Shown: positions 1 through 27,862 of the stretch, one piece after another
How positions within the stretch are numbered: the stretch's first letter is position 1
Layout of the letters: each line of letters opens with the position of its first letter
Assembly (NCBI GenBank): GCA_965112735.1
Contig: OZ218950.1
Coordinates: 186,001-250,000, forward strand
DNA from: Phaeosaccion multiseriatum
Taxonomy: Eukaryota; Protista; Ochrophyta, other classes
Direction: 5' to 3'
DNA: 64,000 nt
Program-made: the position numbers and the translations under genes
The notes under the pieces: model-generated
What the model was told of the DNA's origin: nothing
Databases searched by the model: none
The model's input: only the letters and a program-made list of their open reading frames with translations

Positions 1-808
1 GAGGTCGGCGATGGCCTCGGCCGTGTTGTGGTGGGTCAGTTCCGTCGCGGTGAGGTTTAGGCTTGCGAACTCAGCGCTGATGCGTCGGCTGGCGGATGCT
101 GGCGCTTGTTCGTTGAAGAAGAGGTTCGGGTGTTGCCGTATGGGGGTCGTGGCTGTGAGGTGGGTGTCTTCGTATTCGTCTTGGAGGATGGAGACGATTT
201 GCTCTGTGATCCCGTGTGCGTTTCTGTGAGTTGACGCGTTGGTGGTTTGGGCTGGATCTGAGGCTCGGAAAGTGGCGGTTGGCCTTTCCGGGCTGCGTGC
301 TCGGGGGGTCCTGCTTCGTCCCCTTGGCCTCGTGGTTGGCTGCATGGGTGCTGGGCTGGTCGCTGTGGGGGGTGGTGCTGTTGTAGGGCCTGTTGTCTCG
401 CTGGCGGGCGTGGTAGATCTCCTGGCGGCTGGTGCTGTTTGTTGCCGTGTCGTTGAGATCGGTTGTGGTTGCTGCTGCTGGGGGTGGGCTTCCGCTGCTG
501 TTGCTGTGGGTTCCGTGAGTGCTGGTGGGAGCTGTGGGTCCTGCGGGAGGGTGTTGCGGGGTGCTGCGGCCGCTGGTGGAGCCGTGATGGGGGTGGGCAC
601 GCCTTCCCGTGCTGGTGTTTGGCGAATTGCTGCTGCCGCTGCCCGTCTCTCCCTTCTTTCGAGCCGCTGCTGATCGCGGCTCATAGGTGGCTCCTGCTGG
701 GTTGCTGTGAGGTTTGCTGGTGTCTCCTGGGCTCCGGGGGGCCGCGTGGCCCCCCTGTCGTCCCCTTCCATGGTGGCCCTGTCTTAAGCAGAAAAAAAAG
801 AAGGGTGT
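1..808 (-). mobile_element. 5' portion of non-LTR retrotransposon copy 0 (continues left of window)
   Basis: Essentially identical to 9941-10748. Contains the ATG at 771 (MEGDDRG...) and ends ...cttaagcagaaaaaaaagaagggtgt, followed by host target ggggtgcgagaagca (809-823). Confidence 0.95.
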
Positions 809-1481
809 GGGGTGCGAGAAGCATCGGAAGCAAGGTGGGATGTGCGAGAGGCATGCACGAGTGAAGAGGGAGGGAGCGGAGCAGAAGGAGGAGAATGCCC
901 GTTGTACGCCTGTGCCCAAGCGAGGAGCTGCGGAGGACATCAATGGGAGAGGAAGGAAGAGGGCAAAATGCGCCCCTTCAATGCCTGAGGGAGAGGAGGA
1001 GAGGAAGGAGGAAGGGAAGGAGGCACTGGAGGATGGGAATGGGGTGGGTTTGCTTTCGGGGCTGGGGCTTCATGTCGGGGACGAGGTTCAACTGCCCTGT
1101 GACCTGTGGAGAGGGCTGGAAGATGGCGGGGCTGATGCTGCCACGGCCTTCTGCGGTCGTCGGGACAGGGAGCTATCGAATGGCGTGGTGGTGGCTGTGG
1201 GCCGGAGTAAAGTGTTGCTGCTGCCCCACCTCGCTGTGCGCACAAAGAGGAAGGGGGCGAGCCTGGAGAGCATGATCCGAGGCTTTGCGTCTGCCTACCA
1301 CCGCTATCGCTCAGGAGAAGTAGGGGAGGATGATGATGACGACAAGCTGAAGGAGGAGTGGGCGGTGCTGGAGGAGAGCATGGTGACGGCGAGTGAGAAG
1401 AAGAGGCGCGGACGGAAGGCGCTGCGAGCGTGCGTGCGTGTGGAGGGCTCTGCTGCGGATACCTCGGGACTTGGGATTTAG
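809..1481 (+). pseudogene. 3' half of WRKY19-like zinc-finger repeat gene paralog A, interrupted in its last repeat by element copy 0
   Basis: Reads GCEKHRKQGGMCERHA...GDEVQLPCDLW...DTSGLGI*, near-identical to the C-terminus of intact ORF 27863-29008. Upstream is retroelement sequence instead of further repeats. Confidence 0.85.
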
Positions 1482-3032
1482 TGACCCGATGGCCTTAATC
1501 CGCAGTGAAGCTTGGCACGTGCAATGGGCGAACCGTAGAGTAAGTCAATTGAAGTGAATTGCCCCACCCACTCGCCACACACTGTGCTTCATTTGGGGGG
1601 GGGGGGGGGGGGCGAACGAATGGTTTTAACATTCACAATGGACTTGGCAGCCTACGGGCACGCTGTGTGTGTCACTTGGCGCTGGAGCTGCAGAGATGAC
1701 TTGGCACGACATCGGTTACAGGTATAGAAGGAAGGCTTGATGGTAGATGGATGGCACACAGAATCCGAGGAGGGGGCTTGGAAGTGACTTGAAGACGAGG
1801 CTCGCTGGGGGGATGGGGCACGTAAGCTTACTTGATGATCAGTGTATGGATTGATTGATTGATTGATTGCACTCCCTCTCGTGTCTACTGCAGCCCTGCC
1901 CCGTGTGTGTGTGTGTGTGTGTGTGAAGAGAGGAGTCAAGTCCAGGCATGGCCGCAAAGTCAGGCGTGGACTCGTCTCCTCTCTGCACATCACCCCACTT
2001 TACCCCACTCCTCTCCAACTCACTCAACTCCACCTCTCCCCTGCAATAGAGCCTCCAAGCCTCCACTCCACTGCACGAGCCTAACTAGTCAAGAGGGTGC
2101 ATGCCTCTCCTCTCTTCACACCACACCACTCCACTCCACCACCTCTGGGATCTCTGTTGCCCCCCCTGGCCCCCCTCCCTCAACACCAGTCGGGTGCTCT
2201 TGCCATCCTTGTTCCTGTCCATGCACGCCTTCCCTCTTCTCTCTCTCTCTCTCTCCACTGTGTATTCGTGTATTTATGTCTTTGCTCTCCGCCCTCAAGG
2301 GGTGGCAGTGGATGGGGAGGGGCACACAGGTGGATGGATTGAGAAAGGGGATGGCAGTGGATACAGCAGCAAGAGCATAAGTCGCATTTTGTCTCATGTT
2401 CACCCTTCTTTGGGACTGAAACTCTAACAAATCAAGCTGTCGTGTATGCTCTTACGCCTCCCCTCGGCCCATCCACTGCCATCCCCTTGGTAGGCGGCGG
2501 GCTATGAAGTGTACGACGAGGAGCAGCTGAACGCCATCATCACTCGGTTGTAAGTCAGTGAAGGTGCAAGCAACAGGGACCACGAGAGAGTAGAACATAA
2601 AGGGATGTATCTGTGGATGTAGGCCGACGCCATCCACCCGTCACACCGATGGGCAGCAACAGGGTCGAGTCGGAGAGGAGAGGACAGCCGTGGGCTCAAC
2701 GTAGTAGGAGGGGCGAGCGAGTCAGAGAAAGCGAAGGAAGGGAGAGGGGGGCGTGGAGCGAGCTGAGAAGACGCGTTGGAACGATGTCCGATTAGGCTCC
2801 CGCAGGGGGTCAAGGGGTGAGCATCCTCCGATGGTTGTAGGCAGTCGTCTTCAGGGAAGAAGCTGGAATAGAAGATGAGGGAGGCTGGAGGGTGCAAGGG
2901 GCGGCGAGCGGGGCGACTGAATCCACTGGAGTAGCAGCACGAGCAGCGGTAAGACCAATCGCAGCAGCAGTGAGCGACAACCGCAGACGCAGCAGCAGTA
3001 GCTGGTGGGGGACTAGAAAGCAGCAAGTGCTT
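809..3032. repeat. Segmental duplication of the host gene 3' part plus ~1.55 kb downstream flank (partner ~28348-30622)
   Basis: 1482-3032 aligns with 29009-30622, including the G-run, (GT)n, (CT)n and degenerate exon-like pieces, with scattered substitutions and indels. Confidence 0.9.
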
Positions 3033-4016
3033 TTTTTGGGCGCTTGTCGTCAGCAGCGCGTTGTAGCTGGTGCGGTGCGGCAGGGGGGAGGGGAGGGGCA
3101 TCAGCACCGGTGCTGGCAATGGCAAGCCTTCCATGAGGTGCAGGCTCGTCAGACTGGGCAGATGGAAGGGAGCATCGCAGAGGTAGAGCTTAAGAACTCC
3201 TTGATGGTGATGGGCCTTTCATTTCGATAATTCACTCTTGTCCCTCACTGCTATCGTACGAGCTTTGCACAAACTGTCCCTTCCACTCCCGGTGTCACAG
3301 ACGGGGGGGGAGGTCGGTTTATACATACGAAAAGGGAGAAGTGGCGGCAAGGCTCGGGCCTATAAACGGAAACTGAAACTATATCGCATGTTCCTGGGCT
3401 CCTCCCTTCTTCCCCCCTCCCTGACAAGACTTCAGACGGCGGCGCGGACTTGTTGGAAGCGTTCGAGTTGGCGTAACAAGCATTCGTTTGGTTCTCGAGT
3501 ACCCTGGTGTGTCGTTACCACTTGGGCCAGGCGCTTGGGAACCTCCTTTGTCTTCAGACTGAAGCATTCAATTGTCACTCCTCGTCAGGATTAATAAGAC
3601 CCTATTTCTCAGGTGGATCGAGAGAGACAGTGAAAGAGCAGACGCAGTGGATGGACTCGAAGCCCCTTATGCCCTGAGGTGGATTTGGACCTGTTGAAGA
3701 AACGCAAAGGAGGTGCAAGGAGGATTGTTTGAAGGGCGCGGAGTTGTGAAAATGCGGAAGAAGTGTACTGTGGAGGGGTGTGACAGGCAACGAAGGCAGG
3801 GGGGACTTTGCCAGGGCCATGGGGCTGTGGTGAAGAGGTGTACAGTTGAGGGGTGCGAGAAACATTCGCGACGGGGAGGACTTTGCGTGGCCCACGGGGC
3901 GGTGGTGGTACCGAAGAGGTGTACTGTTGAGGGGTGCGAGAAGCAGTCGCAACAGGGAGGACTTTGCATTGGGCACGGGGCTGTGATGAAGAGGTGTACT
4001 GTTGAGGGGTGCGACA

Positions 4017-7000
4017 TGTATATTAGAGCTTATGGGCTCAGTATTGGAGCGCTCGAGGTAAGTTGTAACCATGTGTAGATGCGTGTATGTGTGGTATTGA
4101 TGGAGCGTGAGGTGGAGGGGAAGAGGATGGTAAGGGTGGTAGAGTAGAGGATAATGGGGAATGGGAAGGGAGTGAAGGGGGGAGGAGGAGATGAAGGGGT
4201 GTGGGAAGGAGTGAGGTGGTGGAGGTGATATGTGAACTAGCCTACTGTGGGTGGTGCGGGTGACAAGGCGTGACTAACTGTGGTTGCTATGCTGTGTGCT
4301 GATGGTCTCGCTGTCTGCTGGCTGGTGTACTCCTGCTCCTCAGGCGGCCGCTCCGTCGATGGCTCCCATGAGCCCCCAGTCGAGGGTTTCTGCTGCTTCG
4401 TGCTGCGTCATGGTGGCTCGAAGGAGGGTGCCATACCTGATCTCCCGCTGTGAGAGGGCGCGTTGAAGGGCGAGGGACAGTTGTTGGCGCAGGAGGCCCT
4501 TGATGGGGCCCGTGGCTGCCGCCGCTGCGGGGCCGAGCCCTCTTGATGCCTTGTGGATGGCCATCGCCTCGATGAGCTCGTCCGTTTGGTGGCCCAGTCT
4601 GCCGTACGTCTCGATTGCAATGCACTTCAGGGTTGAAGTCCCGGGCAGAAAACTGCCCAGGTAGTGGGTGCGCTTGCGTTCTTCGGCGGCGGCTGCTTCG
4701 TGGCCTGGCGTGGTGGAGGCCCGTCCCACGTGAGTGGGGGCGGTGGGGTTGGTGACGGTGATGTCGCAGAGGAGGTTTCTCCGCAGGGGTGCGTCCGCTC
4801 CCGGGAAGCTACCTGCGGGATAGGTCAGGTCCATGCGTAGGTCTCGGCCTGCTCGGGTGCCCGTGGGGCCGTCGAAGCAGGTCTGGTCCTCTACACGTGC
4901 TCCTCCAATGCCCACGCTGTGCATCATCCTCCCGAAGGCCTTGACGAGGAGGTGGTGTGTGTGGTTGTGGAGGCCGGTGCGGGGGCAGATGGTGGCGTGG
5001 GTAGTGCTTGCCGTGCGGGCGCAGCCTGTGCCAAGGCAGGGTGGGGGCGGGTCCGCGTATGGCGTGTTGACACCGAGGTTGCGACGAAGGGCCATGGTCC
5101 ATTCTGCGGGGGCCATGGTGTTGTGGCCGTGGGGGAGCGCTCCGAGGAAGGCCATGGCGCCCCTTCCTCGCTGTGAGTGGAGTCGGGCTGTTGCCATTTC
5201 CTGTGTCTCCTCTCCCCTCTGTGCCTCTGCCGGTGTGACGTCGATGGTGGCGATGCTCTGCGTCAGCTCCTCATGGCGGCGTTTGTGGATGAAGGTGGTG
5301 AGGGCCTTCTGGACGCCGTGGGTCGGTTGACGGCCTGCCTGATGGCTCCTGCGCACGTTGCGTCGCGCTGTGTCCTGGGCTTGGTGGTCAGGCGGCTCGA
5401 GTACGCGTGAGCGGGCCTCGTCGAACTGTGCCTGACCCACTGCTTGGATGAGGGGGGCCTCAGGGACCCCCTCCTCGTGCAGGAGGTTGACGCTGTCGGC
5501 GACGCTCTTGAGGGCTCCGTTGGTGAACAGCTGGTCCGGTAGGGCGCTCTCTTGGGAGCCTTCCCGGCGTGCGGTGCGGCTGAGCAGGGGGGAGGGTGAG
5601 CATCTTGTTGCCAAGGTATGCTGCTGGGGCGATGTCGTGGAGGCTGGTGAGGCCGAGGCCGCCGAAGCGCCGTGCCGTATGCATTTGTAGGCGCTGTGTC
5701 TCCGTCCATGGCTCCTCTTGTGCATCTGCGGCCTGCTCCAGAGGGGGGGCATCGGGGAGTCGCATGATGTGGGCCATTGTCGCTCTGTTGGTGCGGTCTG
5801 CCCTGCTGCCGAGGGCGCGTCGGAAGATGGAGGGGTCAATGGCTCTCGCCAGGTGTGTGAGCCTGGCTGGGAGGCATTGGAGGAGGACGAGGGTGGCCGC
5901 CTGGGTGTTGTCCCACTCGCTGCAGTGTTTGGCGAGTTGGAGGTAGCCCCTGGGGTCTTCTTGGCCGAGGATGTTGCGGAGGTACTCTTCGATGTACTCC
6001 TCCGTGCCGACGGGGATGCCGGCTACCACGGTACCCTCGGTGGCAAGTGTGGCGCCCTGCCGTTGGGCGTGGTCCCTGTCAGCCTGTGTTGGCTGCTTGC
6101 CTTTGCCCATGAGGTAAACCGTTTTCCTCTCGTTGAACTCGAGGCCCAAGCCTCGGAATTGGGCTTGGAGATGGGCATGGCGTGGGGCGTAGGTCTGTAG
6201 GGGTGCGTCGGGTTCCAGCTGGTCCATGAGGTCGTCTGCGTAGGCGGAGATGGTGGGGCGGTTCGCTGCGGTGTCGGCTGTGTTCTGAACTTTCAGCACT
6301 GGGTGGATGGCGGCTGCGAACATGAGAGGCCCTTCTGGTGCTCCTTGGTTGACTCCGGAGCTCTGGTGGATGGTCTGGGTGCCGTCTGGTGTGAGGGCGT
6401 TGTGGGCGGAGGCGTGGGAGAGGCTGGCGATGGCGTAGTTGATGCCTGCTGGGTCGATGGTAGGGAGTGCTCCTGAGGCTAGGACGCCTCTGGCACGCGA
6501 CACGCGGGTGTAGGCCTTGGTGATGTCATGCAGCACGACGGTTTTGCCGGCATCGTGCGCTAGCTGGGCTGCTGCGGCGTGTGTTTCCCCTCCGCCTCTG
6601 ACCGCTACCGCTAGCTGTCCTGCGCTTCTGAGCTCTGGGCCCACCCTGTCCGCGATGAGCTTCATGTGACAGCTCTCCACGAGGCTGCGGTAGAGGTTGG
6701 GGGATGTCACAGGACGCGCTTTCTCGCCGAGGGCTGCGGCGCTGGTGCTGAACCACCGTTTGGCGAGCTGTGGAGGCAGTGGAGTGTCCCCCGTTCGGAG
6801 CAGCTCGTAGGTGTCAGTCAGAGCCTCCACGATTGCGTACTCCTGGGGGCTGTCCGGGGGGTACTTGACGTGGCTCGCCCTGCGCCCGTCTGCTCCTTGG
6901 CCCTTCCAGAAGTTGACCCTCCGGTAGGTCAGCAGCATGGCTGTGCTGATCTCCTCTCTGGTGACGTCGTTGCCATTCTCGGGGTGCTCCTGCACCTGGG

Positions 7001-10000
7001 TTCTGGCGTACTCCCTGGCTGCTGCTGCTGCTGTGTTGATCTCTTCGAGGCTCTCGTCGACGTGCGCTTGCTGGAGGCGTCTAAAGGTCTCGTGTGTGGG
7101 AGGGAGGTGGCCGTCTCTGCTCTTTGTGCTGAGCCTCGCCGCGGCCTTGTGCAGGCCTCCGGGTTTGGTGAGCAGGTGGGCGCAGGTTTCTCTCCGTCGC
7201 TCCTCTGTCTGTGCCTGTGCTGGGGGTGGTGGGCGGCGTGCGTGTGCTGTGGCTATCGCTGCTTGTGCGAGTGGGGCGATGTCGAGGTCGAGGACCATCT
7301 GTATCCGCTGCTGGCGGCTGTAGGCTCCGTCTTTAGAGAAGAGCATGGCAGGGAGGAGGTGGTGGAAGACATCCCATGCCAGAAGGGTGTGGAGGGTGGC
7401 GTCGGTGGGGCCGTTCTTGTGGGCCCTCAGCGCCCTGTTCCAGTTGTTGAGCGCTCTTTGCTGTAAGCTGATAATCGAGCTGACGTGGCGGGGGTTGCAC
7501 TGCGCTACTGTCTCAAACACGAGTGTTGAGAGGATGGTACCCTGCGGGTCCAGGGCCCCTAGGCGGAGGACGTTTGGGTGCTGCATGGGCCATCCTTCCT
7601 CGGGTGTATCGTCGTTGGCTGGCCCTTCTCCGTCCCCTCCGTCCCCGCCGCTACCTCCTTGGCCTCTGCTCCGTCCTCCTCCCCCTCGTCTCGCTGCTGC
7701 TGCTGTGGTTCCTTGCGTGCGTGTGCTATCTCCCCCTGCCCTTTCTCTCTGAGGTCCCCTCTCTGCTGCTGCTCCTTGTCCGTTTCCTTCCCCCCTCCCT
7801 CGTCCTCCTCTTCGTCCTTCTACTCCACTTGGCGCTGCTGCGATTGCTCCTCCTCCTCCTCCTCCTCCTTCCGCGTGCCCTCGCCCTCCTCCTCTGCCCG
7901 TGGGGGTGGTGGGTTGGTACGGGTTGAGCCTGGCCGTTGCTGTCGTGTGCTGGGGCGTTGCCGTACGCGACGGGTCCTCGTTTGGGTCTGGGCCTAGATA
8001 GGCGTTCTCGAGGTCGTTGAGGGGGCCTTGGTAGGCCGATGCTGCGTTGCCTTGGGTGAGGATGGTCCTGAGGGCGGGGATGGCTCGTTGAGCTTGGTAG
8101 CCAGCCATGCAGCCTTGCGCGGGGCAGGGGAGGTTGCCTGGTGGTATGACGGGCTGCTGGTTGGCTCTCCTCAGTGTGGCTTGGTCGTTCAGGTGGTGAA
8201 GGAGGCACGCGGGGTGAACGGTGTGTTGGCAGCGTCGGGTGCGTACTGGCCACTCCGTGGTTGGTGCGATGAAAGGGGGGTCCGCGTCAGACATGCATAT
8301 GCAGCATATCGGGGCTGGGGGGGCGGTAGGTTGGGGTGGGGGTGTGTGTCGGGTGGTGGGGGGTGGCTGGGACTGGCGGCGCCGTCCTTGGCTGGCCTGC
8401 GCGTGCTGCTGATGCGACTCTCTGCGCTCCCTCGCTAGGCGATCCCTTGCGCGGCCCATAGCTCTCCCTCCTTGTGCTGTGATGGCCTGCTCGATCGTGT
8501 GCCGGTAGCAGGGGTTGCGGCAGTAGGGGCAGAGGTGGTCGTTGCGGTTGGGGTACGTGCTCATGACTCCCAATGCGCAGTGGTTGTGCACGTGATGTTC
8601 GTCTTCGTGCATGGCGACTTGTGCTTGGCCAGTGAGCGGTTCCATACACACCGGGCAGTTGGGTAGCTCCTCGTTGTTGGTGGGGTCGCCTCCTCCTTCT
8701 GCTTCGTCACCTCCTCCCTCTGCTTGCCCTTCCCCTCCTTCTGCCGCTGCTTCCCGTGCCAGTGCTGGGCGCTCTCCTCCGCCTCTGCTGTTTTCGCCCT
8801 CTCCCCCCCTGCTACTACTCTTCCGTCGCGGTCTCCTCGTCCCCCTCCCCTGTGTCCCGCTCGCTCTCCTCTCCCTTCTCCCTCCGGGTCGTGCTCCCGT
8901 GTAGTGTCTGTCCCACCTGCTCTTGTCGGTGGGGGCATGCTGCGAGCTCGTGGTGGGATGGTTGACGATGCCGGGAGGTGTGCTGCTTCGTATGCTCGTA
9001 TGCATGTGTGGCATATGGGCTGCCGTAGGCCTGCTTGCGGGAAGCTTCTGAGGAGGGATCTGCCGGAGTTTCTGTGGGCCAGGTTGCCGCATCCACGTAT
9101 ACAGTCACGTAGCTGATACGTTCTGTTCTGTGGTCCGCTCTGTGGGCCGTTGGCGCGGTACCACAGGATTGACGCGGCCTGGGGGTGGTGTTCGCGCATC
9201 CATCGTTCCCACTCTCGGCCGCGGTTGGGGTGGTGGCTCAACTGGTGCCTGTTGAGGCGGTCTCTGGACCTGCCGACCGTGACGAAGGTGTCATTGCACT
9301 GTTCGAAGTTGCAGAGGACTCCCGTGGCGATGTAGTTGTTGTCAATGTTCCTGCGGTACGCTGTGGTGTTGTTGTGGGTGTCGTCCGTCTGTGGCGTGGT
9401 TGTGTCGCTTTGGGTGGGGGGTGTTGGCGGTCCTGGTGCGGTTCCCCGGGGGGCCTGCCTCGTGCGTAAGGCGAGGGCTTGCCCCGGCGCCCACCACGGT
9501 GTGGCCATGGTGTTGGCGAAGGGGGAGGTGGTGGTGTTGTTGGTGTGGTCGCGTAGGGCGTGGCCGTAGCGCTCAACGATGGCTTGGACGTCGGGTAATA
9601 CCGCGATGAGTTCCTCCTGTCGTGAGGCGGTGATGTAGTCGTTGACCAACTCGTTGGAGGTGATCTCTTGGCCTGCGAGCGTGTGGGCATAGGCCTCTAC
9701 GATCTGTTGCCATCCAAGGGGGTAATCTCCTCCCCCATGTGGTCTTCCGGGGGTGGTGGGGGGGCCTCCGCTCCTTAGAGCTTGTCTGAGGAGGGGCATA
9801 TAGAAGTGCGAGTTGGTAGGCGGGAGCGCCGCGTCGCGCTGGTGGCGTATGGTGTTGCTCCATGTCGTTGGTGCGTGTCCATGCGTGTCTGTTTCGAGTG
9901 ATGCTGTCTCTTCCTCGTGCGTCGTGGGGGGTGGTCGTACGAGGTCGGCGATGGCCTCGGCCGTGTTGTGGTGGGTCAGTTCCGTCGCGGTGAGGTTTAG

Positions 10001-10748: not shown

Positions 10749-10916
10749 GGGGGTGCGAGAAGCAACGGATCCAAGGAGGACTTTGCGTTGGGCATGGGGC
10801 TGTGGTGAAGAGGTGTACTGTTGAGGGGTGTAACAAGCATCGTGTCCGAGGAGGGCTTTGTGTTAGCCACGGAGCTGTGGTGGTACCGAAGAGGTGTACT
10901 GTGGAGGGGTGCGAGA

Positions 10917-11524: not shown

Positions 11525-11610
11525 GGGGTGCGATAAGAGGGGGGTCCAAGGAGGACTTTGCCTGGCCCACGGAGCTGTGACCAAGAGGTGCACTGTTGAG
11601 GGGTGCGAGA

Positions 11611-14600: not shown

Positions 14601-17600
14601 CGTACTCCCTGGCTGCTGCTGCTGCTGTGTTGATCTCTTCGAGGCTCTCGTCGACGTGCGCTTGCTGGAGGCGTCTAAAGGTCTCGTGTGTGGGAGGGAG
14701 GTGGCCGTCTCTGCTCTTTGTGCTGAGCCTCTCCGCGGCCTTGTGCAGGCCTCCGGGTTTGGTGAGCAGGTGGGCGCAGGTTTCTCTCCGTCGCTCCTCT
14801 GTCTGTGCCTGTGCTGGGGGTGGTGGGCGGCGTGCGTGTGCTGTGGCTATCGCTGCTTGTGCGAGTGGGGCGATGTCGAGGTCGAGGACCATCTGTATCC
14901 GCTGCTGGCGGCTGTAGGCTCCGTCTTTAGAGAAGAGCATGGCAGGGAGGAGGTGGTGGAAGACATCCCATGCCAGAAGGGTGTGGAGGGTGGCGTCGGT
15001 GGGGCCGTTCTTGTGGGCCCTCAGCGCCCTGTTCCAGTTGTTGAGCGCTCTTTGCTGTAAGCTGATAATCGAGCTGACGTGGCGGGGGTTGCACTGCGCT
15101 ACTGTCTCAAACACGAGTGTTGAGAGGATGGTACCCTGCGGGTCCAGGGCCCCTAGGCGGAGGACGTTTGGGTGCTGCATGGGCCATCCTTCCTCGGGTG
15201 TATCGTCGTTGGCTGGCCCTTCTCCGTCCCCTCCGTCCCCGCCGCTACCTCCTTGGCCTCTGCTCCGTCCTCCTCCCCCTCGTCTCGCTGCTGCTGCTGT
15301 GGTTCCTTGCGTGCGTGTGCTATCTCCCCCTGCCCTTTCTCTCTGAGGTCCCCTCTCTGCTGCTGCTCCTTGTCCGTTTCCTTCCCCCTCCCTCGTCCTC
15401 CTCTTCCTCCTTCTACTCCACTTGGCGCTGCTGCGATTGCGCCTCCTCCTCCTCCTCCTCCTTCTTCCGCGTGCCCTCGCCCTCCTCCTCTGCCCGTGGG
15501 GGTGGTGGGTTGGTACGGGTTGAGCCTGGCCGTTGCTGTCGTGTGCTGGGGCGTTGCCGTACGCGACGGGTCCTCGTTTGGGTCTGGGCCTAGATAGGCG
15601 TTCTCGAGGTCGTTGAGGGGGCCTTGGTAGGCCGATGCTGCGTTGCCTTGGGTGAGGATGGTCCTGAGGGCGGGGATGGCTCGTTGAGCTTGGTAGCCAG
15701 CCATGCAGCCTTGCGCGGGGCAGGGGAGGTTGCCTGGTGGTATGACGGGCTGCTGGTTGGCTCTCCTCAGTGTGGCTTGGTCGTTCAGGTGGTGAAGGAG
15801 GCACGCGGGGTGAACGGTGTGTTGGCAGCGTCGGGTGCGTACTGGCCACTCCGTGGTTGGTGCGATGAAAGGGGGGTCCGCGTCTGACATGCATATGCAG
15901 CATATCGGGGCTGGGGGGGCGGTAGGTTGGGGTGGGGGTGTGTGTCGGGTGGTGGGGGGTGGCTGGGACTGGCGGCGTCGCCCTTGGCTGGCCTGCGCGT
16001 GCTGCTGATGCGACTCTCTGCGCTCCCTCGCTAGGCGATCCCTTGCGCGGCCCATAGCTCTCCCTCCTTGTGCTGTGATGGCCTGCTCGATCGTGTGCCG
16101 GTAGCAGGGGTTGCGGCAGTAGGGGCAGAGGTGGTCGTTGCGGTTGGGGTACCTGCTCATGACTCCCAATGCGCAGTGGTTGTGCACGTGATGTTCGCCT
16201 TCGTGCATGGCGACTTGTGCTTGGCCAGTGAGCGGTTCCATACACACCGGGCAGTTGGGTAGCTCCTCGTTGTTGGTGGGGTCGCCTCCTCCTTCTCCTT
16301 CGTCACCTCCTCCCGCTGCTTGCCCTTCCCCTCCTTCTGCCGCTGCTTCCCGTGCCAGTGCTGGGCGCTCTCCTCCGCCTCTGCTGTTTTCGCCCTCTTC
16401 CCCCCTGCTACTACTCTTCCTTCGCGGTCTCCTCGTCCCCCTCCCCTGTGTCCCGCTCGCTCTCCTCTCCCTCCTCCCTCCTGGTCGTGCTCTCGTGTAG
16501 TGTCTGTCCCACCTGCTCTTGTCGGTGGGGGCATGCTTCGAGCTCGTTGGATGGTTGGCGGTGCTGGTAGGCTTGCGGCTTCGTGTGCTCGTATGCAGGC
16601 GTTGCATAGGGGTTGTCGTAGGCCTGATTGCGGGAAGCGGGTAAGGAAGGATCTGCCGGAGTTTCGGTGGGCCAGGTTGCCGCATCCACTTGTGCAGTCC
16701 CGGAGCTGGTACGTATTATTCTGTGGTCCGCTCTGTGGGCCGTTGGCGCGGTACCACAGGATTGACGCGGCCTGGGGGTGGTGTTCGCGCATCCATCGGT
16801 CCCACTCTCTGCCGCGGTTCGGGTGGTGGCTCGACTGGTGCCTGATGAGGCGGTCTCTTGTGTTGCCTACCGTGACGAAGGTGTCGTGGCATTCGCCAAA
16901 GTTGCAGAGGATGCCCCCTTGAATGTTTCCATTGTCGGGGTGTCTTCGGTACACTCGGGCGTTGTTGGGGTTGTCCTCCGGTGTTGGTGGGCTGGGTGTG
17001 GTTGCGTCGCTTTGGGCGGGGGGTGGTGGCGGTCCTGGTGCGGTTCCCCGGGGGGCCTGTCTCGTGCGTAGGGCGAGGGCTTGCCCCGGCGCCCACCACG
17101 GTGTGGCCATGGTGTTGGCGAAGGGGGAGGTGGTGGTGTTGTTGGTGTGGTCGCGTAGGGCGTGGCCGTAGCGCTCAACGATGGCTTGGACGTCGGGTAA
17201 TACCGCGATGAGTTCCTCCTGTCGTGAGGCGGTGATGTAGTCGTTGACCAACTCGTTGGAGGTGATCTCTTGGCCTGCGAGCGTGTGGGCATAGGCCTCC
17301 ACGATCTGTTGCCATCCAAGGGGGTAATCTCCTCCCCCATGTGGTCTTCCGGGGGTGGTGGGGGGGCCTCCGCTCCTTAGAGCTTGTCTGAGGAGGGGCA
17401 TATAGAAGTGCGAGTTGGTAGGCGGGAGCGCCGCGTCGCGCTGGTGGCGTATGGTGTTGCTCCATGTCGTTGGTGCGTGTCCATGCGTGTCTGTTTCGAG
17501 TGATGCTGTCTCTTCCTCGTGCGTCGTGGGGGGTGGTCGTACGAGGTCGGCGATGGCCTCGGCCGTGTTGTGGTGGGTCAGTTCCGTCGCGGTGAGGTTT

Positions 17601-18350
17601 AGGCTTGCGAACTCAGCGCTGATGCGTCGGCTGGCGGATGCTGGCGCTTGTTCGTTGAAGAAGAGGTTCGGGTGTTGCCGTATGGGGGTCGTGGCTGTGA
17701 GGTGGGTGTCTTCGTATTCGTCTTGGAGGATGGAGACGATTTGCTCTGTGATCCCGTGTGCGTTTCTGTGAGTTGACGCGTTGGTGGTTTGGGCTGGATC
17801 TGAGGCTCGGAAAGTGGCGGTTGGCCTTTCCGGGCTGCGTGCTCGGGGGGTCCTGCTTCGTCCCCTTGGCCTCGTGGTTGGCTGCATGGGTGCTGGGCTG
17901 GTCGCTGTGGGGGGTGGTGCTGTTGTAGGGCCTGTTGTCTCGCTGGCGGGCGTGGTAGATCTCCTGGCGGCTGGTGCTGTTTGTTGCCGTGTCGTTGAGA
18001 TCGGTTGTGGTTGCTGCTGCTGGGGGTGGGCTTCCGCTGCTGTTGCTGTGGGTTCCGTGAGTGCTGGTGGGAGCTGTGGGTCCTGCGGGAGGGTGTTGCG
18101 GGGTGCTGCGGCCGCTGGTGGAGCCGTGATGGGGGTGGGCACGCCTTCCCGTGCTGGTGTTTGGCGAATTGCTGCTGCCGCTGCCCGTCTCTCCCTTCTT
18201 TCGAGCCGCTGCTGATCGCGGCTCATAGGTGGCTCCTGCTGGGTTGCTGTGAGGTTTGCTGGTGTCTCCTGGGCTCCGGGGGGCCGCGTGGCCCCCCTGT
18301 CGTCCCCTTCCATGGTGGCCCTGTCTTAAGCAGAAAAAAAAGAAGGGTGT
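11611..18350 (-). mobile_element. Full-length retrotransposon copy 2 (6740 bp; coding span 11934-18313)
   Basis: Junctions gaggggtgcgaga|tgtatattag and agaagggtgt|gcgagaagca. Same domain set as copy 1, with frameshifts at homopolymers. Confidence 0.95.
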
Positions 18351-18431
18351 GCGAGAAGCAGTCCCTACAGGGAGGACTTTGCGTTGGGCACGGGGCTGTG
18401 GTGAAGCGGTGTACTGTTGAGGGGTGCGAGA

Positions 18432-21400
18432 TGTATATTAGAGCTTATGGGCTCAGTATTGGAGCGCTCGAGGTAAGTTGTAACCATGTGTAGATGCGTG
18501 TATGTGTGGTATTGATGGAGCGTGAGGTGGAGGGGAAGAGGATGGTAAGGGTGGTAGAGTAGAGGATAATGGGGAATGGGAAGGGAGTGAAGGGGGGAGG
18601 AGGAGATGAAGGGGTGTGGGAAGGAGTGAGGTGGTGGAGGTGATATGTGAACTAGCCTACTGTGGGTGGTGCGGGTGACAAGGCGTGACTAACTGTGGTT
18701 GCTATGCTGTGTGCTGATGGTCTCGCTGTCTGCTGGCTGGTGTACTCCTGCTCCTCAGGCGGCCGCTCCGTCGATGGCTCCCATGAGCCCCCAGTCGAGG
18801 GTTTCTGCTGCTTCGTGCTGCGTCATGGTGGCTCGAAGGAGGGTGCCATACCTGATCTCCCGCTGTGAGAGGGCGCGTTGAAGGGCGAGGGACAGTTGTT
18901 GGCGCAGGAGGCCCTTGATGGGGCCCGTGGCTGCCGCCGCTGCGGGGCCGAGCCCTCTTGATGCCTTGTGGATGGCCATCGCCTCGATGAGCTCGTCCGT
19001 TTGGTGGCCCAGTCTGCCGTACGTCTCGATTGCAATGCACTTCAGGGTTGAAGTCCCGGGCAGAAAACTGCCCAGGTAGTGGGTGCGCTTGCGTTCTTCG
19101 GCGGCGGCTGCTGCGTGGCCTGGCGTGGTGGAGGCCCGTCCCACGTGAGTGGGGGCGGTGGGGTTGGTGACGGTGATGTCGCAGAGGAGGTTTCTCCGCA
19201 GGGGTGCGTCCGCTCCCGGGAAGCTACCTGCGGGATAGGTCAGGTCCATGCGTAGGTCTCGGCCTGCTCGGGTGCCCGTGGGGCCGTCGAAGCAGGTCTG
19301 GTCCTCTACACGTGCTCCTCCAATGCCCACGCTGTGCATCATCCTCCCGAAGGCCTTGACGAGGAGGTGGTGTGTGTGGTTGTGGAGGCCGGTGCGGGGG
19401 CAGATGGTGGCGTGGGTAGTGCTTGCCGTGCGGGCGCAGCCTGTGCCAAGGCAGGGTGGGGGCGGGTCCGCGTATGGCGTGTTGACACCGAGGTTGCGAC
19501 GAAGGGCCATGGTCCATTCTGCGGGGGCCATGGTGTTGTGGCCGTGGGGGAGCGCTCCGAGGAAGGCCATGGCGCCCCTTCCTCGCTGTGAGTGGAGTCG
19601 GGCTGTTGCCATTTCCTGTGTCTCCTCTCCCCTCTGTGCCTCTGCCGGTGTGACGTCGATGGTGGCGATGCTCTGCGTCAGCTCCTCATGGCGGCGTTTG
19701 TGGATGAAGGTGGTGAGGGCCTTCTGGACGCCGTGGGTCGGTTGACGGCCTGCCTGATGGCTCCTGCGCACGTTGCGTCGCGCTGTGTCCTGGGCTTGGT
19801 GGTCAGGCGGCTCGAGTACGCGTGAGCGGGCCTCGTCGAACTGTGCCTGACCCACTGCTTGGATGAGGGGGGCTCAGGGACCCCCTCCTCGTGCAGGAGG
19901 TTGACGCTGTCGGCGACGCTCTTGAGGGCTCCGTTGGTGAACAGCTGGTCCGGTAGGGCGCTCTCTTGGGAGCCTTCCCGGCGTGCGGTGCGGCTGAGCA
20001 GGGGGGAGGGTGAGCATCTTGTTGCCAAGGTATGCTGCTGGGGCGATGTCGTGGAGGCTGGTGAGGCCGAGGCCGCCGAAGCGCCGTGCCGTATGCATTT
20101 GTAGGCGCTGTGTCTCCGTCCATGGCTCCTCTTGTGCATCTGCGGCCTGCTCCAGAGGGGGGCATCGGGGAGTCGCATGATGTGGGCCATTGTCGCTCTG
20201 TTGGTGCGGTCTGCCCTGCTGCCGAGGGCGCGTCGGAAGATGGAGGGGTCAATGGCTCTCGCCAGGTGTGTGAGCCTGGCTGGGAGGCATTGGAGGAGGA
20301 CGAGGGTGGCCGCCTGGGTGTTGTCCCACTCGCTGCAGTGTTTGGCGAGTTGGAGGTAGCCCCTGGGGTCTTCTTGGCCGAGGATGTTGCGGAGGTACTC
20401 TTCGATGTACTCCTCCGTGCCGACGGGGATGCCGGCTACCACGGTACCCTCGGTGGCAAGTGTGGCGCCCTGCCGTTGGGCGTGGTCCCTGTCAGCCTGT
20501 GTTGGCTGCTTGCCTTTGCCCATGAGGTAAACCGTTTTCCTCTCGTTGAACTCGAGGCCCAAGCCTCGGAATTGGGCTTGGAGATGGGCATGGCGTGGGG
20601 CGTAGGTCTGTAGGGGTGCGTCGGGTTCCAGCTGGTCCATGAGGTCGTCTGCGTAGGCGGAGATGGTGGGGCGGTTCGCTGCGGTGTCGGCTGTGTTCTG
20701 AACTTTCAGCACTGGGTGGATGGCGGCTGCGAACATGAGAGGCCCTTCTGGTGCTCCTTGGTTGACTCCGGAGCTCTGGTGGATGGTCTGGGTGCCGTCT
20801 GGTGTGAGGGCGTTGTGGGCGGAGGCGTGGGAGAGGCTGGCGATGGCGTAGTTGATGCCTGCTGGGTCGATGGTAGGGAGTGCTCCTGAGGCTAGGACGC
20901 CTCTGGCACGCGACACGCGGGTGTAGGCCTTGGTGATGTCATGCAGCACGACGGTTTTGCCGGCATCGTGCGCTAGCTGGGCTGCTGCGGCGTGTGTTTC
21001 CCCTCCGCCTCTGACCGCTACCGCTAGCTGTCCTGCGCTTCTGAGCTCTGGGCCCACCCTGTCCGCGATGAGCTTCATGTGACAGCTCTCCACGAGGCTG
21101 CGGTAGAGGTTGGGGGATGTCACAGGACGCGCTTTCTCGCCGAGGGCTGCGGCGCTGGTGCTGAACCACCGTTTGGCGAGCTGTGGAGGCAGTGGAGTGT
21201 CCCCCGTTCGGAGCAGCTCGTAGGTGTCAGTCAGAGCCTCCACGATTGCGTACTCCTGGGGGCTGTCCGGGGGGTACTTGACGTGGCTCGCCCTGCGCCC
21301 GTCTGCTCCTTGGCCCTTCCAGAAGTTGACCCTCCGGTAGGTCAGCAGCATGGCTGTGCTGATCTCCTCTCTGGTGACGTCGTTGCCATTCTCGGGGTGC

Positions 21401-24400
21401 TCCTGCACCTGGGTTCTGGCGTACTCCCTGGCTGCTGCTGCTGCTGTGTTGATCTCTTCGAGGCTCTCGTCGACGTGCGCTTGCTGGAGGCGTCTAAAGG
21501 TCTCGTGTGTGGGAGGGAGGTGGCCGTCTCTGCTCTTTGTGCTGAGCCTCTCCGCGGCCTTGTGCAGGCCTCCGGGTTTGGTGAGCAGGTGGGCGCAGGT
21601 TTCTCTCCGTCGCTCCTCTGTCTGTGCCTGTGCTGGGGGTGGTGGGCGGCGTGCGTGTGCTGTGGCTATCGCTGCTTGTGCGAGTGGGGCGATGTCGAGG
21701 TCGAGGACCATCTGTATCCGCTGCTGGCGGCTGTAGGCTCCGTCTTTAGAGAAGAGCATGGCAGGGAGGAGGTGGTGGAAGACATCCCATGCCAGAAGGG
21801 TGTGGAGGGTGGCGTCGGTGGGGCCGTTCTTGTGGGCCCTCAGCGCCCTGTTCCAGTTGTTGAGCGCTCTTTGCTGTAAGCTGATAATCGAGCTGACGTG
21901 GCGGGGGTTGCACTGCGCTACTGTCTCAAACACGAGTGTTGAGAGGATGGTACCCTGCGGGTCCAGGGCCCCTAGGCGGAGGACGTTTGGGTGCTGCATG
22001 GGCCATCCTTCCTCGGGTGTATCGTCGTTGGCTGGCCCTTCTCCGTCCCCTCCGTCCCCGCCGCTACCTCCTTGGCCTCTGCTCCGTCCTCCTCCCCCTC
22101 GTCTCGCTGCTGCTGCTGTGGTTCCTTGCGTGCGTGTGCTATCTCCCCCTGCCCTTTCTCTCTGAGGTCCCCTCTCTGCTGCTGCTCCTTGTCCGTTTCC
22201 TTCCCCCTCCCTCGTCCTCCTCTTCCTCCTTCTACTCCACTTGGCGCTGCTGCGATTGCTCCTCCTCCTCCTCCTCCTCCTCCTCCTTCCGCGTGCCCTC
22301 GCCCTCCTCCTCTGCCCGTGGGGGTGGTGGGTTGGTACGGGTTGAGCCTGGCCGTTGCTGTCGTGTGCTGGGGCGTTGCCGTACGCGACGGGTCCTCGTT
22401 TGGGTCTGGGCCTAGATAGGCGTTCTCGAGGTCGTTGAGGGGGCCTTGGTAGGCCGATGCTGCGTTGCCTTGGGTGAGGATGGTCCTGAGGGCGGGGATG
22501 GCTCGTTGAGCTTGGTAGCCAGCCATGCAGCCTTGCGCGGGGCAGGGGAGGTTGCCTGGTGGTATGACGGGCTGCTGGTTGGCTCTCCTCAGTGTGGCTT
22601 GGTCGTTCAGGTGGTGAAGGAGGCACGCGGGGTGAACGGTGTGTTGGCAGCGTCGGGTGCGTACTGGCCACTCCGTGGTTGGTGCGATGAAAGGGGGGTC
22701 CGCGTCTGACATGCATATGCAGCATATCGGGGCTGGGGGGGCGGTAGGTTGGGGTGGGGGTGTGTGTCGGGTGGTGGGGGGTGGCTGGGACTGGCGGCGT
22801 CGCCCTTGGCTGGCCTGCGCGTGCTGCTGATGCGACTCTCTGCGCTCCCTCGCTAGGCGATCCCTTGCGCGGCCCATAGCTCTCCCTCCTTGTGCTGTGA
22901 TGGCCTGCTCGATCATGTGCCGGTAGCAGGGGTTGCGGCAGTAGGGGCAGAGGTGGTCGTTGCGGTTGGGGTACCTGCTCATGACTCCCAATGCGCAGTG
23001 GTTGTGCACGTGATGTTCGCCTTCGTGCATGGCGACTTGTGCTTGGCCAGTGAGCGGTTCCATACACACCGGGCAGTTGGGTAGCTCCTCGTTGTTGGTG
23101 GGGTCGCCTCCTCCTTCTCCTTCGTCACCTCCTCCCGCTGCTTGCCCTTCCCCTCCTTCTGCCGCTGCTTCCCGTGCCAGTGCTGGGCGCTCTCCTCCGC
23201 CTCTGCTGTTTTCGCCCTCTTCCCCCCTGCTACTACTCTTCCTTCGCGGTCTCCTCGTCCCCCTCCCCTGTGTCCCGCTCGCTCTCCTCTCCCTCCTCCC
23301 TCCTGGTCGTGCTCTCGTGTAGTGTCTGTCCCACCTGCTCTTGTCGGTGGGGGCATGCTTCGAGCTCGTTGGATGGTTGGCGGTGCTGGTAGGCTTGCGG
23401 CTTCGTGTGCTCGTATGCAGGCGTTGCATAGGGGTTGTCGTAGGCCTGATTGCGGGAAGCGGGTAAGGAAGGATCTGCCGGAGTTTCGGTGGGCCAGGTT
23501 GCCGCATCCACTTGTGCAGTCCCGGAGCTGGTACGTATTATTCTGTGGTCCGCTCTGTGGGCCGTTGGCGCGGTACCACAGGATTGACGCGGCCTGGGGG
23601 TGGTGTTCGCGCATCCATCGGTCCCACTCTCTGCCGCGGTTCGGGTGGTGGCTCGACTGGTGCCTGATGAGGCGGTCTCTTGTGTTGCCTACCGTGACGA
23701 AGGTGTCGTGGCATTCGCCAAAGTTGCAGAGGATGCCCCCTTGAATGTTTCCATTGTCGGGGTGTCTTCGGTACACTCGGGCGTTGTTGGGGTTGTCCTC
23801 CGGTGTTGGTGGGCTGGGTGTGGTTGCGTCGCTTTGGGCGGGGGGTGGTGGCGGTCCTGGTGCGGTTCCCCGGGGGGCCTGTCTCGTGCGTAGGGCGAGG
23901 GCTTGCCCCGGCGCCCACCACGGTGTGGCCATGGTGTTGGCGAAGGGGGAGGTGGTGGTGTTGTTGGTGTGGTCGCGTAGGGCGTGGCCGTAGCGCTCAA
24001 CGATGGCTTGGACGTCGGGTAATACCGCGATGAGTTCCTCCTGTCGTGAGGCGGTGATGTAGTCGTTGACCAACTCGTTGGAGGTGATCTCTTGGCCTGC
24101 GAGCGTGTGGGCATAGGCCTCCACGATCTGTTGCCATCCAAGGGGGTAATCTCCTCCCCCATGTGGTCTTCCGGGGGTGGTGGGGGGGCCTCCGCTCCTT
24201 AGAGCTTGTCTGAGGAGGGGCATATAGAAGTGCGAGTTGGTAGGCGGGAGCGCCGCGTCGCGCTGGTGGCGTATGGTGTTGCTCCATGTCGTTGGTGCGT
24301 GTCCATGCGTGTCTGTTTCGAGTGATGCTGTCTCTTCCTCGTGCGTCGTGGGGGGTGGTCGTACGAGGTCGGCGATGGCCTCGGCCGTGTTGTGGTGGGT

Positions 24401-25172
24401 CAGTTCCGTCGCGGTGAGGTTTAGGCTTGCGAACTCAGCGCTGATGCGTCGGCTGGCGGATGCTGGCGCTTGTTCGTTGAAGAAGAGGTTCGGGTGTTGC
24501 CGTATGGGGGTCGTGGCTGTGAGGTGGGTGTCTTCGTATTCGTCTTGGAGGATGGAGACGATTTGCTCTGTGATCCCGTGTGCGTTTCTGTGAGTTGACG
24601 CGTTGGTGGTTTGGGCTGGATCTGAGGCTCGGAAAGTGGCGGTTGGCCTTTCCGGGCTGCGTGCTCGGGGGGTCCTGCTTCGTCCCCTTGGCCTCGTGGT
24701 TGGCTGCATGGGTGCTGGGCTGGTCGCTGTGGGGGGTGGTGCTGTTGTAGGGCCTGTTGTCTCGCTGGCGGGCGTGGTAGATCTCCTGGCGGCTGGTGCT
24801 GTTTGTTGCCGTGTCGTTGAGATCGGTTGTGGTTGCTGCTGCTGGGGGTGGGCTTCCGCTGCTGTTGCTGTGGGTTCCGTGAGTGCTGGTGGGAGCTGTG
24901 GGTCCTGCGGGAGGGTGTTGCGGGGTGCTGCGGCCGCTGGTGGAGCCGTGATGGGGGTGGGCACGCCTTCCCGTGCTGGTGTTTGGCGAATTGCTGCTGC
25001 CGCTGCCCGTCTCTCCCTTCTTTCGAGCCGCTGCTGATCGCGGCTCATAGGTGGCTCCTGCTGGGTTGCTGTGAGGTTTGCTGGTGTCTCCTGGGCTCCG
25101 GGGGGCCGCGTGGCCCCCCTGTCGTCCCCTTCCATGGTGGCCCTGTCTTAAGCAGAAAAAAAAGAAGGGTGT
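18432..25172 (-). mobile_element. Full-length retrotransposon copy 3 (~6741 bp; coding span 18755-25135)
   Basis: Left junction ggggtgcgaga|tgtatattag. Almost identical to copy 2. Right end followed by an extra target-like segment to 25199. Confidence 0.95.
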
Positions 25173-26774
25173 GAGAAGCTGTCACAGCAGGGAGGATTAT
25201 AGGGGTGCGAGAAGCAGTCGAAACAGGGAGGACTTTGCGTGGCCCACGGGGCTGTGGTGAAGGGGTGTACTGTTGAGGGGTGCGACAAGCAGTCGAAACA
25301 GGGGGGACTTTGCGTGGCCCACGGGGCTGTGAAGGTACCGAAAAGGTGTACTGTTGAGGGGTGCGACAAACAGTCGCAACAGGGGGGACTTTGCAAGGGC
25401 CATGGAGCTGTGGTGAAGAGGTGTACTGTTGAGGGGTGCGATAAGGTACGGGTCCAAGGAGGACTTTGCCAGGCCCACGGGGCTGTGGTGGTACCGAAGA
25501 GGTGTACTGTTGAGGGGTGCGACAAGCAACCGAAGCAGGGGGGACTTTGCCTTGGGCACGGTGCTGTGGTGAAGAGGTGAACTGTTGAGGGGTGCGACAA
25601 GCAGCGGGTCCAAGGAGGACTTTGCAAGGGCCACGGGGCTGTGGTGGTACGGAAGAGGTGTACTGTTGAGGGGTGCGAGAAGCATCGGCAGCAAGGTGGG
25701 ATGTGCCAGAGGCATGCACGAGTGAAGAGGGAGGGGGCGGAGCAGAAGGAGGAGAATGCCCCGTGTACGCCTGTGCCCAAGCGAGGAGCTGCGGAGGACA
25801 TCAATGGGAGAGGAAGGAAGAGGGCAAAATGCCCTACTTCAATGCCTGGGGGAGAGGAGGAGAGGAAGGAGGCACTGGAGGATGGGAATGGGGTGGGTTT
25901 GCTTGCGGGGCTGGGGCTTCATGTCGGGGACGAGGTTCAACTGCCCTGTGACCTGTGGAGAGGGCTGGAAGATGGCGGGGCTGATGCTGCCACGGCCTTC
26001 TGCGGTCGTCGGGACAGGGAGCTATCGAATGGCGTGGTGGTGGCTGTGGGCCGGAGTAAAGTGTTGCTGCTGCCCCACCTCGCTGTGCGCACAAAGAGGA
26101 AGGGGGCGAGCCTGGAGAGCACGATCCGAGGCTTTGTATCTGCCTACCACCGCTATCGCTCAGGAGGAGCAGGGGAGGATGATGATGACGACAAGCTGAA
26201 GGAGGAGTGGGCGGTGCTGGAGGAGAGCATGGTGACGGCGAGTGAGAAGAAGAGGCGCGGACGGAAGGCGCTGCGAGCGTGCGTGCGTGTGGAGGGCCCT
26301 GCTGCTGATACCTCGGGACTTGGGATTTAGTGACCCGATGGCCTTCCGTCCGCCGTATCGCCTTCGCCGTGGTGAAGCTTGGGGCTTGTTTCGTACAGTG
26401 GGTGTGAAGAGTTGAGTAAGTCAATACACGTGATGGACCTTGATGAAAACAGTCGCCACCCACATCGCTTCACTGCTGTGGAAGGGGCCGAGTAACTGTG
26501 ACTTGGGGGCTTATGAATGTGCTGTGTGTGAATTTTGATGTATTTCTACGTGCAGTGGTGAGTTTCTTTACAAACAAGAGTGTAAATGAGGGCTCAAGGT
26601 TTCGTTCGCGCGAGGCAGGGGCTCACTCCGAGTCAGTACCGCCCAGCACGGGCCCGGCACCAGCATCCTCCTGAGAGTGCGAGGAGCTGCTACTAATCCC
26701 TGAATCATCCATAGACACGCTGTTGCTCATTCGAATCCCTCGCCCGTGTGGGCGTTGCTGAGGGGGGATAGACC

Positions 26775-27720: not shown

Positions 27721-27862
27721 GCATTCGACTTCTCTCTCTCCTCTTCACCACGACAGACAGTGAAGGAAGAGCCTTCTTGTCCACGGGGGAGGGCTTATAT
27801 ACTTTTGAAGAAACGCAAAGGAGGTGCAAGGAGGATTGTTTGAAGGGCGCGGAGTTGTGAGA

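Follow-up and report, generated by a model that had tools for sequence, protein, structure and literature searches.

Introduction

Sequence-specific LINEs (long interspersed nuclear elements) are thought to survive via multicopy, non-protein-coding "safe havens". The targets listed for them are the genes for ribosomal RNA (rRNA), transfer RNA and small nuclear RNA (snRNA), along with microsatellites, telomeres, and other transposons (PMC5035012). Here, we describe a LINE of approximately 6.73 kb from Phaeosaccion multiseriatum (assembly GCA_965112735.1), found in a 64,000-nt stretch of contig OZ218950.1 (C1:186001-250000, hereafter the window) within a 67-Mb assembly of 22 contigs with a GC content of about 60%. 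It is very probably an autonomous, target-specific member of the restriction-like-endonuclease (RLE) group, which integrates, in antisense to the host gene, at the E-G-C-[D/E]-K codons of a zinc-finger gene family.

R2 is an RLE LINE specific for 28S ribosomal DNA (rDNA), and its transcripts retain 28S bases, which gives them a target-like RNA 5' end, as in the element described here. The likeness to R2 (8GH6, 9NL2, 9NL3, 9DOU) extends to the single open reading frame (ORF), the order of reverse transcriptase (RT), thumb, linker, CCHC motif and PD-(D/E)xK endonuclease, a 3' junction that is exact and lacks poly(A), 5' ends that are often truncated, and a conserved target present in many copies. 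In contrast to R2, the target of the element is a protein-coding repeat and not rDNA, the flanks being zinc-finger units (Rfam found no rRNA in the window). The element also lies antisense to its target gene, shows neither an identified hepatitis delta virus (HDV)-like ribozyme nor a Myb domain detectable by Pfam, carries two RING-like fingers and an N-terminal region of about 1300 aa, and leaves an 11-bp duplication, whereas the cut made by R2 is near-blunt.

CRE, SLACS, and CZAR of trypanosomatids are early-branching protist RLE LINEs specific for the spliced-leader gene, with C2H2-type fingers upstream of the RT. The element resembles them in using one site in a tandem multicopy gene and in its C2H2-like finger upstream of the RT, but its target is a coding repeat rather than a spliced-leader RNA gene. 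NeSL and Utopia, oomycete families included, are RLE LINEs specific for SL1 and U2 snRNA genes (PMC4640811). They share with the element the RLE type, a strength of specificity that varies by family, hosts that include members of the stramenopile-alveolate-rhizarian (SAR) supergroup (oomycetes), and a small multicopy gene family as a niche. However, they insert into small RNA genes (Rfam detected no snRNA in the window), they have no RING-like fingers as described, and the RNase H located upstream of the RT in oomycete Utopia was not found by Pfam in the element. Tx1L, which carries an apurinic-like endonuclease (APE) and inserts into the transposon Tx1D, and the microsatellite- and telomere-specific LINEs are likewise sequence-specific and use another repeated sequence as their niche; unlike the element, they have an APE endonuclease, and their targets are non-coding or selfish DNA, not a conserved coding motif. 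The element departs from R2, CRE, and NeSL/Utopia in the defining features that were tested.

Results

Target site and genome-wide distribution

All four visible 3' ends in the window (the left end of the element on the plus strand) start with TGTATATTAGAGC directly after GAGGGGTGCGA[C/G]A, which ends at positions 4016, 10916, 11610, and 18431. A preliminary description of the window, made from sequence alone, had placed the 3' junctions (4016/4017, 10916/10917, 11610/11611, and 18431/18432) at one nucleotide of the host repeat, and this held exactly. It also proved right that all copies are antisense to the host, since the RT ORF is a minus-strand frame and the zinc-finger ORFs are plus-strand frames. 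The target motif occurs 20 times in the window versus 0.43 expected.

The 3'-terminal 25-mer of the element occurs 116 times in the genome (≤2 mismatches) and not once in a reversed control. The 13-mer target adjoins 95 of these 116 3' ends, always in one orientation (33-nt pattern, ≤2 mismatches), 62 of them exactly. Exact empty sites, GAGGGGTGYGANAAG, number 309 in the 67-Mb genome, giving an occupancy of exact sites of approximately one in six, and the chance of a random insertion striking the exact target site is of the order of 1e-6. With 95 of 116 3' ends on one 13-mer and only about 309 exact empty sites in 67 Mb, chance is excluded. The genome-wide comparison of flanks, in which unrelated sequences would have spoken against a fixed target, thus placed most 3' ends on the same 13-mer, in agreement with the specificity for a coding repeat proposed in the preliminary description.

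Element copies are concentrated in two large gene-family arrays, one on contig C1 (0.09-0.78 Mb) and one on C8 (1.43-1.77 and 2.17-2.26 Mb); smaller occupied arrays are found on C2 and C13, together with solitary insertions. Among 54 distinct 63-nt flanks that were read, about 33 are true finger units, from C1, C8, C2, and C13, and about 8 are element-to-element joints. At least three diverged subfamilies are represented among the flanking finger units: ...KRCTVEGC[ED] with TGCGA, ...KTCTVEGCE with GTGGAGGGGTGTGA, and ...KRCSVEGC[DE] with TCGAGGGGTGTGA.

Organization of the window

Positions 1-26330 consist of plus-strand zinc-finger coding units broken up by five minus-strand copies of one element, the boundaries of which were set by self-BLAST and end motifs. 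The features are as follows:

1-809 (-): copy 0, a full-length element that the window start cuts, leaving its 5' part; ORF start codon at 771-769; 3' end at C1:180065
810-1481 (+): host paralog A, last zinc-finger unit and C-terminal tail, resuming with GGGTGCGAGAAG directly after copy 0
3745-4016 (+): start of host paralog B, probable ATG CGG AAG AAG TGT and first four zinc-finger units, ending at target GAGGGGTGCGACA
4017-10749 (-): copy 1, a full-length element of 6733 nt, frameshifted in comparison with intact copies found elsewhere
10711-8561 (-): copy 1 open frame, 716 aa, with the C2H2-like finger
9092-5460 (-): copy 1 open frame, 1210 aa, with two RING-like fingers and the RT
6022-4340 (-): copy 1 open frame with the CCHC motif and endonuclease
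9000-9430 (-): hypervariable module of the element with the C2H2-like finger (element nt ~1320-2000)
4343-5140 (-): CCHC motif and restriction-like endonuclease
10750-10916 (+): part of host paralog B separating copies 1 and 2, two zinc-finger units
10917-11524 (-): copy 2, 5'-truncated, last 608 nt of the element, followed by GGGGTGCGATA
11525-11610 (+): one host zinc-finger unit between copies 2 and 3
11611-18351 (-): copy 3, full length, 6741 nt, frameshifted
18352-18431 (+): one host zinc-finger unit between copies 3 and 4
18432-25173 (-): copy 4, full length, 6742 nt, frameshifted
25174-26330 (+): remainder of paralog B, about 7 zinc-finger units and C-terminal tail
27824-29008 (+): host paralog C, an ORF without interruption that encodes 7 WRKY19-type fingers and a tail; five exact empty target sites

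Paralog C is empty, as had been described, and it is intact, with 7 fingers. Four of 14 units of paralog B had been counted as occupied; the four insertions are there, but about 15 units are recognizable.

Outside the element and its host genes, a minus-strand open frame of 1761 aa (50232-55517) carries an EsV-1-7 cysteine-rich motif near its C-terminus (PF19114, E 2.8e-11), and the remainder of the 30-64 kb region is dense in microsatellites, e.g., (CTA)135 at 41487-41896.

Protein encoded by the element

Pfam analysis of the element ORFs identified RVT_1 (PF00078) on the minus strand (E 4.6e-7). With a profile of the RT region comprising 28 relatives, R2 proteins (1.6e-21) and LINE-1 ORF2p (3e-18) came ahead of group II intron and retron RTs; the similarity of the single RT sequence to R2 was marginal (E 0.099). 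Judged by these comparisons, the element carries a LINE-type RT. Open frames over the RT elsewhere in the genome span 1573-1745 aa, and in two C8 copies they reach 2172 and 2132 aa (C8:1573931-1575769 and C8:1546345-1548018, respectively), nearly the whole element. Therefore, the intact form is a single ORF (about 2120 aa), of which the 716-aa "ORF1" and the 1210-aa "ORF2" of copy 1 are pieces. In order, its domains are a long N-terminal region that contains a C2H2-like finger, a pair of RING-like fingers, RT, thumb and linker, CCHC motif, and PD-(D/E)xK endonuclease.

To characterize the C-terminal region, 491 aa were taken uninterrupted from an intact copy (L030:1827-3299, minus strand). An alignment with 17 relatives shows complete or nearly complete (≥90%) conservation of C-C-H-C, E, D (RMD), D (DxTV), and K. 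The AlphaFold model reached a predicted local distance difference test (pLDDT) value of 80.7 and a predicted template modeling (pTM) score of 0.80. The top seven Foldseek matches of this model were all R2, and only R2 proteins were matched at E < 1e-3. VIA-align superposed it on the thumb-linker-zinc knuckle-endonuclease region of R2 with Z 15.2-18.8 over 314-344 residues; the next-best folds, PD-(D/E)xK cap-snatching nucleases and Prp8, reached Z ≤7.7. By sequence, searching solved structures with the C-terminal domain, as a single sequence and as a profile, gave no match, and the R2 endonuclease was not reached. The modeled fold identifies the element as a LINE with a restriction-like endonuclease, CCHC and PD-(D/E)xK being placed C-terminal to the RT, in line with the preliminary description, which had set it beside RLE-type elements. 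No Exo_endo_phos was found in any element ORF at E ≤ 0.01 by Pfam, and there is no N-terminal apurinic-like endonuclease. Neither did Pfam identify RNase H in the element or, at E ≤ 0.01, a Myb domain, Pfam being weak for divergent Myb domains.

The C2H2-like finger (CX4CX16HX3-4H) was recognized by eye. Two RING-like Cys/His clusters (about 8100-8660 of the window, minus strand) lie between the finger region and the RT; zf-RING_2 matched them with E 6.7e-5 and 23.5 bits, under the cut-off of 27.3, and Pfam did not detect such fingers in seven relatives, leaving their assignment as RING fingers weakly supported. Of the 106 differences between copy 1 and copies 3 and 4, 85 are located inside the 680-nt module (element nt 1320-2000), the rest being about 99.9% identical. 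This mosaic pattern suggests recombination between subfamilies differing in a putative specificity module.

An exhaustive search of 1.8 billion representatives yielded as best relatives 433 unnamed metagenomic proteins with at most 32% identity. Word-indexed protein searches (1-2 unnamed matches each) and cluster look-up provided no names for them, atlas data offered Fornicata, diatoms, Porifera, and Preaxostyla as leads only, and the contigs of three relatives (L051-L053) contain no zinc-finger units in the flanks. Among 30 copies, the median identity over the 3' 1.8 kb is 99.1%, the family therefore being young; on this sequence evidence, the element is probably still active.

Ends of the element and a proposed integration mechanism

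The element has no poly(A) tail, a 3' untranslated region (UTR) of about 320 nt, and a 5' leader of about 37 nt ending in GCCACCATGG. On the plus strand, full-length copies end in A7-12 followed by GAAGGGTGTG, a 10-nt target-like stretch that is one mismatch away from the C8-type target. It is present even in C1-type sites and is therefore carried in the element RNA. The 5' joins to the host use microhomology, 5' truncation is frequent, and in L001 and L029 elements stand head-to-tail with only about 13 nt between them.

On these data, the first nick falls on the sense strand of the gene at GAGGGGTG[C/T]GA[N]A^AG, with a 1-nt ambiguity since every flank ends in A. Because the complementary DNA (cDNA) has plus-strand polarity, it must be primed by the 3' hydroxyl of the host-sense strand at ...GCGAGA^, and it begins exactly at the element 3' end. 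Given a duplication of 11 bp, the opposite strand is cut second, about 11 bp upstream, and the target-like 5' end, which together with the duplication recreates the target, explains the head-to-tail tandems. By analogy with R2, the process would be target-primed reverse transcription, the N-terminal finger module would read the target, and the protein would bind its own 3' UTR of about 320 nt. The antisense orientation excludes co-transcription with the host gene. Several hundred selectively conserved target sites in the gene family would constitute a renewable niche, and unequal crossing-over may further multiply or shuffle the inserted units.

The element was seen in sequencing runs of two samples from two studies (short Logan unitigs). 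Contigs of run X5 (source organism, other study) and run X7 (organism C) skip 286 nt of the 3' UTR (window 10955-11242); the skipped stretch, which holds 40-nt G-rich tandem repeats (11035-11125), represents a 3' UTR length variant. In run X7 (organism C, same study), a low-depth contig corresponding to window 11604-11639 has ...CAGCAC GCGAGA in place of a finger unit before the element 3' end. The source genome may not be the only one to hold the element or a close relative.

Strength of the site preference

Several findings weigh against a strictly site-specific, autonomous element. Roughly a fifth of the copies, about 21 of 116, lie off the 13-mer, and about 12 of the 54 flanks consist of unrelated DNA with a short G-rich ...GA(N)A at its end. 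Every copy in the window is frameshifted, and Rfam searches of the window and of both element ends matched neither a ribozyme nor any other RNA family. Moreover, an arrangement of a 608-nt copy and a full-length copy occurs twice, just upstream of the window and at 10917-18351, with an identical inner 60-nt flank, and at C1:680000-693600 (L008-L012, L023, L025, L026) a 4.1-kb unit is repeated four times in tandem. As the sampled off-target flanks share only the short G-rich end, recognition appears to be relaxed or partly driven by microhomology, and the insertion specificity is a strong preference, not an absolute one.

Among the alternatives, the one with the most weight, although we consider it rather unlikely, accepts the element as real and ascribes the choice of site mainly to base pairing of the nicked DNA end with target-like element RNA (a read-through 3' flank or the target-like 5' end), the encoded fingers not reading a long site and the endonuclease needing few bases. 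The off-target copies, which share just 3-7 nt beside the nick, would fit this explanation, as would the near-copy of the target at all full-length 5' ends (GAAGGGTGTG) and the microhomology at the 5' joins. The same applies to locus L047 on C3, where the exact 13-mer is present with no zinc-finger unit upstream of it, as from a short 3' transduction. On the other hand, 82% of the copies sit on the full 13-mer, though short GA-rich ends are vastly commoner in 67 Mb; R2, a relative of known structure, reads its site with N-terminal fingers; and the one module of the element that is hypervariable is its finger region, which is what one would expect of a specificity determinant.

Host zinc-finger gene family

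The ORF of paralog C matches PF24906 (WRKY19-type zinc finger) in 7 stretches (E 2.5e-40). The host unit is 75 nt long, and across 40 distinct units the mean entropy is 0.44, 0.40, and 0.77 bits at codon positions 1, 2, and 3, respectively. Cys, His, and Gly are invariant despite synonymous variation, and a stop occurs in 1 of the 40 units; the host repeat is coding sequence under constraint. The 13-mer spans E-G-C-[D/E]-K, zinc-ligand cysteine included, so that protein-level selection keeps the site constant. The paralogs are 91-98% alike in the coding region, with the tail of paralog A 96-98% identical to those of B and C, and their intergenic DNA differs. No Pfam domain was found in the host tail or the intergenic ORFs.

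These properties bear on the possibility that the zinc-finger arrays are themselves part of another mobile or selfish repeat, as in the case of Tx1L inserting into Tx1D. The family is indeed highly multicopy and clustered, with a weak Pfam match to a KDZ-transposase-associated cysteine cluster (CxC6, E 5.4e-9). Its strongest match, however, is the WRKY19 zinc finger, in 7 repeats, the constraint is of the coding type with a single stop-bearing unit, only the coding region is common to the paralogs, and the neighboring ORFs contain no transposase-like domain, all of which makes this explanation very improbable.

In the C8 arrays (L002:1419-1440 and L003), the host units come in two versions, some with GAGA TGTAT CGGGTCC and others with GAGA AGCAT CGGATCC, and the five bases past the nick site in the former are the first five bases of the element 3' end. 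The former may be either a variant unit or the footprint of an excised or aborted insertion.

Independent integrations and later duplication

The statistics on truncation and duplication draw on 50 loci in addition to the window. Across 30 loci, each 3.3 kb long, 17 5'-truncation lengths were found besides full length, all with one common 3' nucleotide: 105, 191, 314, 320, 332, 372, 397, 481, 608, 827, 943, 949, 2982, 3217, 5019, 5144, and 6277 nt. Where both ends lie in host units, the host sequence resumes inside the target, and the target-site duplications measure 4-11 bp, with a modal 11 bp, GGGGTG[C/T]GA[N]A. Their two sides match at the polymorphic base (L019, T/T; L024, C/C; L022, the rare GGGA/GGGA), and they are therefore real target-site duplications from staggered nicks. 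Self-comparison revealed neither long terminal repeats nor terminal inverted repeats. L019 (C1:179371) holds a 608-nt copy identical to copy 2, with a perfect 11-bp duplication, and elsewhere elements are inserted into the duplicated target at the 5' end of another element.

Duplication after insertion also contributed. Copies 3 and 4 differ at 4 of 6733 positions (99.94% identity), and the flanks of copies 1 and 2 mismatch at the polymorphic target base (C vs G, G vs T); these observations, together with the recurring 608-nt and full-length pair, attribute part of the local pattern to duplication or recombination after insertion. Each 4.1-kb unit of the C1 array is made up of two truncated copies, of 2982 and 949 nt, both accompanied by a host unit of their own, and the array is a tandem amplification that followed insertion. 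Copy number is thus inflated in part by segmental and tandem duplication, the window included.

Taken to its limit, this evidence would leave no true specificity, just one or a few chance insertions whose number grew through duplication (tandem or segmental), unequal crossing-over, and gene conversion in the gene arrays. The four-fold array, the twice-occurring pair, the near-identity of copies 3 and 4, and the mismatched flanks of copies 1 and 2 all suit such an origin. However, 17 truncation lengths end at one 3' nucleotide, about 33 unit flanks come from three diverged subfamilies on four contigs, duplications agree at rare polymorphic bases, and there are solitary insertions on C2 and C13 as well as insertions into the duplicated target of other elements. 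Since duplication alone cannot make new truncation points joined to one site, this explanation is largely refuted, and we give it only a very slight chance. The genome as a whole demands many independent integrations. The separate retrotransposition events claimed in the preliminary description are therefore borne out genome-wide, by the truncation classes and duplications, but not for all five copies in the window, which arose partly by duplication or recombination.

An assembly artefact, in which collapsed or mis-joined repeats give false junctions, is hardly credible: the region is highly repetitive, and the short unitigs, none of which spans an element or a junction, gave no clean empty-site joint, but the assembly comprises 22 contigs for 67 Mb, the 116 junctions show coherent duplications and truncations, and the element is present in the runs of both samples.

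Possible splicing of the element as an antisense intron

On the host-sense strand, every copy presents a perfect 5' splice-site consensus, GAG/GTAAGT, 41 nt inside the element 3' end and a pyrimidine-rich tract ending in CTTAAGCAG (CAG) 17-18 nt inside the element 5' end. Their positions in the window are:

4055-4063, 10955-10963, 11649-11657, and 18470-18478 (+): GAG/GTAAGT sites
783-791, 10723-10731, 18325-18333, and 25147-25155 (+): acceptor-like sites

The element could, in principle, be spliced out of the host pre-mRNA and so be harmless in a coding exon, a LINE acting as an antisense "intron". We regard this as improbable. The predicted residue left in the mRNA is 62-70 nt long; with an 8-A 5' end and the modal 11-bp duplication, it would be 69 nt, that is, 23 stop-free codons restoring the G-C-E-K frame. 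Preservation of the frame by the spliced residues was considered as well and is not supported, as the residue is a multiple of three in only 3 of 7 full-length copies checked, and the splice observation was made post hoc. If splicing-out did occur, it would explain the strict antisense orientation. On the element strand, the CTTAAG region, just before the start codon, is also acceptor-like (T-rich tract and AG).

Discussion

The mechanism outlined here is familiar; what is new lies in the class of target, the antisense orientation, and an unusual set of domains. In the literature, recent reviews included (Repbase and Dfam were outside this search), we found no description of a protein-coding repeat as the target of such LINEs, and nothing relevant on WRKY19 together with a retrotransposon. 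With at most 32% identity to its relatives, the lineage is very distant from anything named. Intact copies exist, which makes biochemical work feasible; use of the element as an integration tool is speculative.

The haven in this case is a codon-constrained E-G-C-[D/E]-K motif, present in several hundred repeats of a tandem gene family, so that the idea of safe havens widens to include protein-coding repeats: a transposon target can be kept intact by purifying selection acting on a protein motif, just as it is by rRNA function. With a hypervariable finger module, element subfamilies, three diverged target subfamilies, and graded off-target sites, the system offers a natural test bed for how RLE LINEs gain new specificities. 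For the host, it is a case of a mobile element that affects how large a zinc-finger gene family is and how intact it remains: about one in six exact sites is occupied, and one gene of the window bears four insertions.

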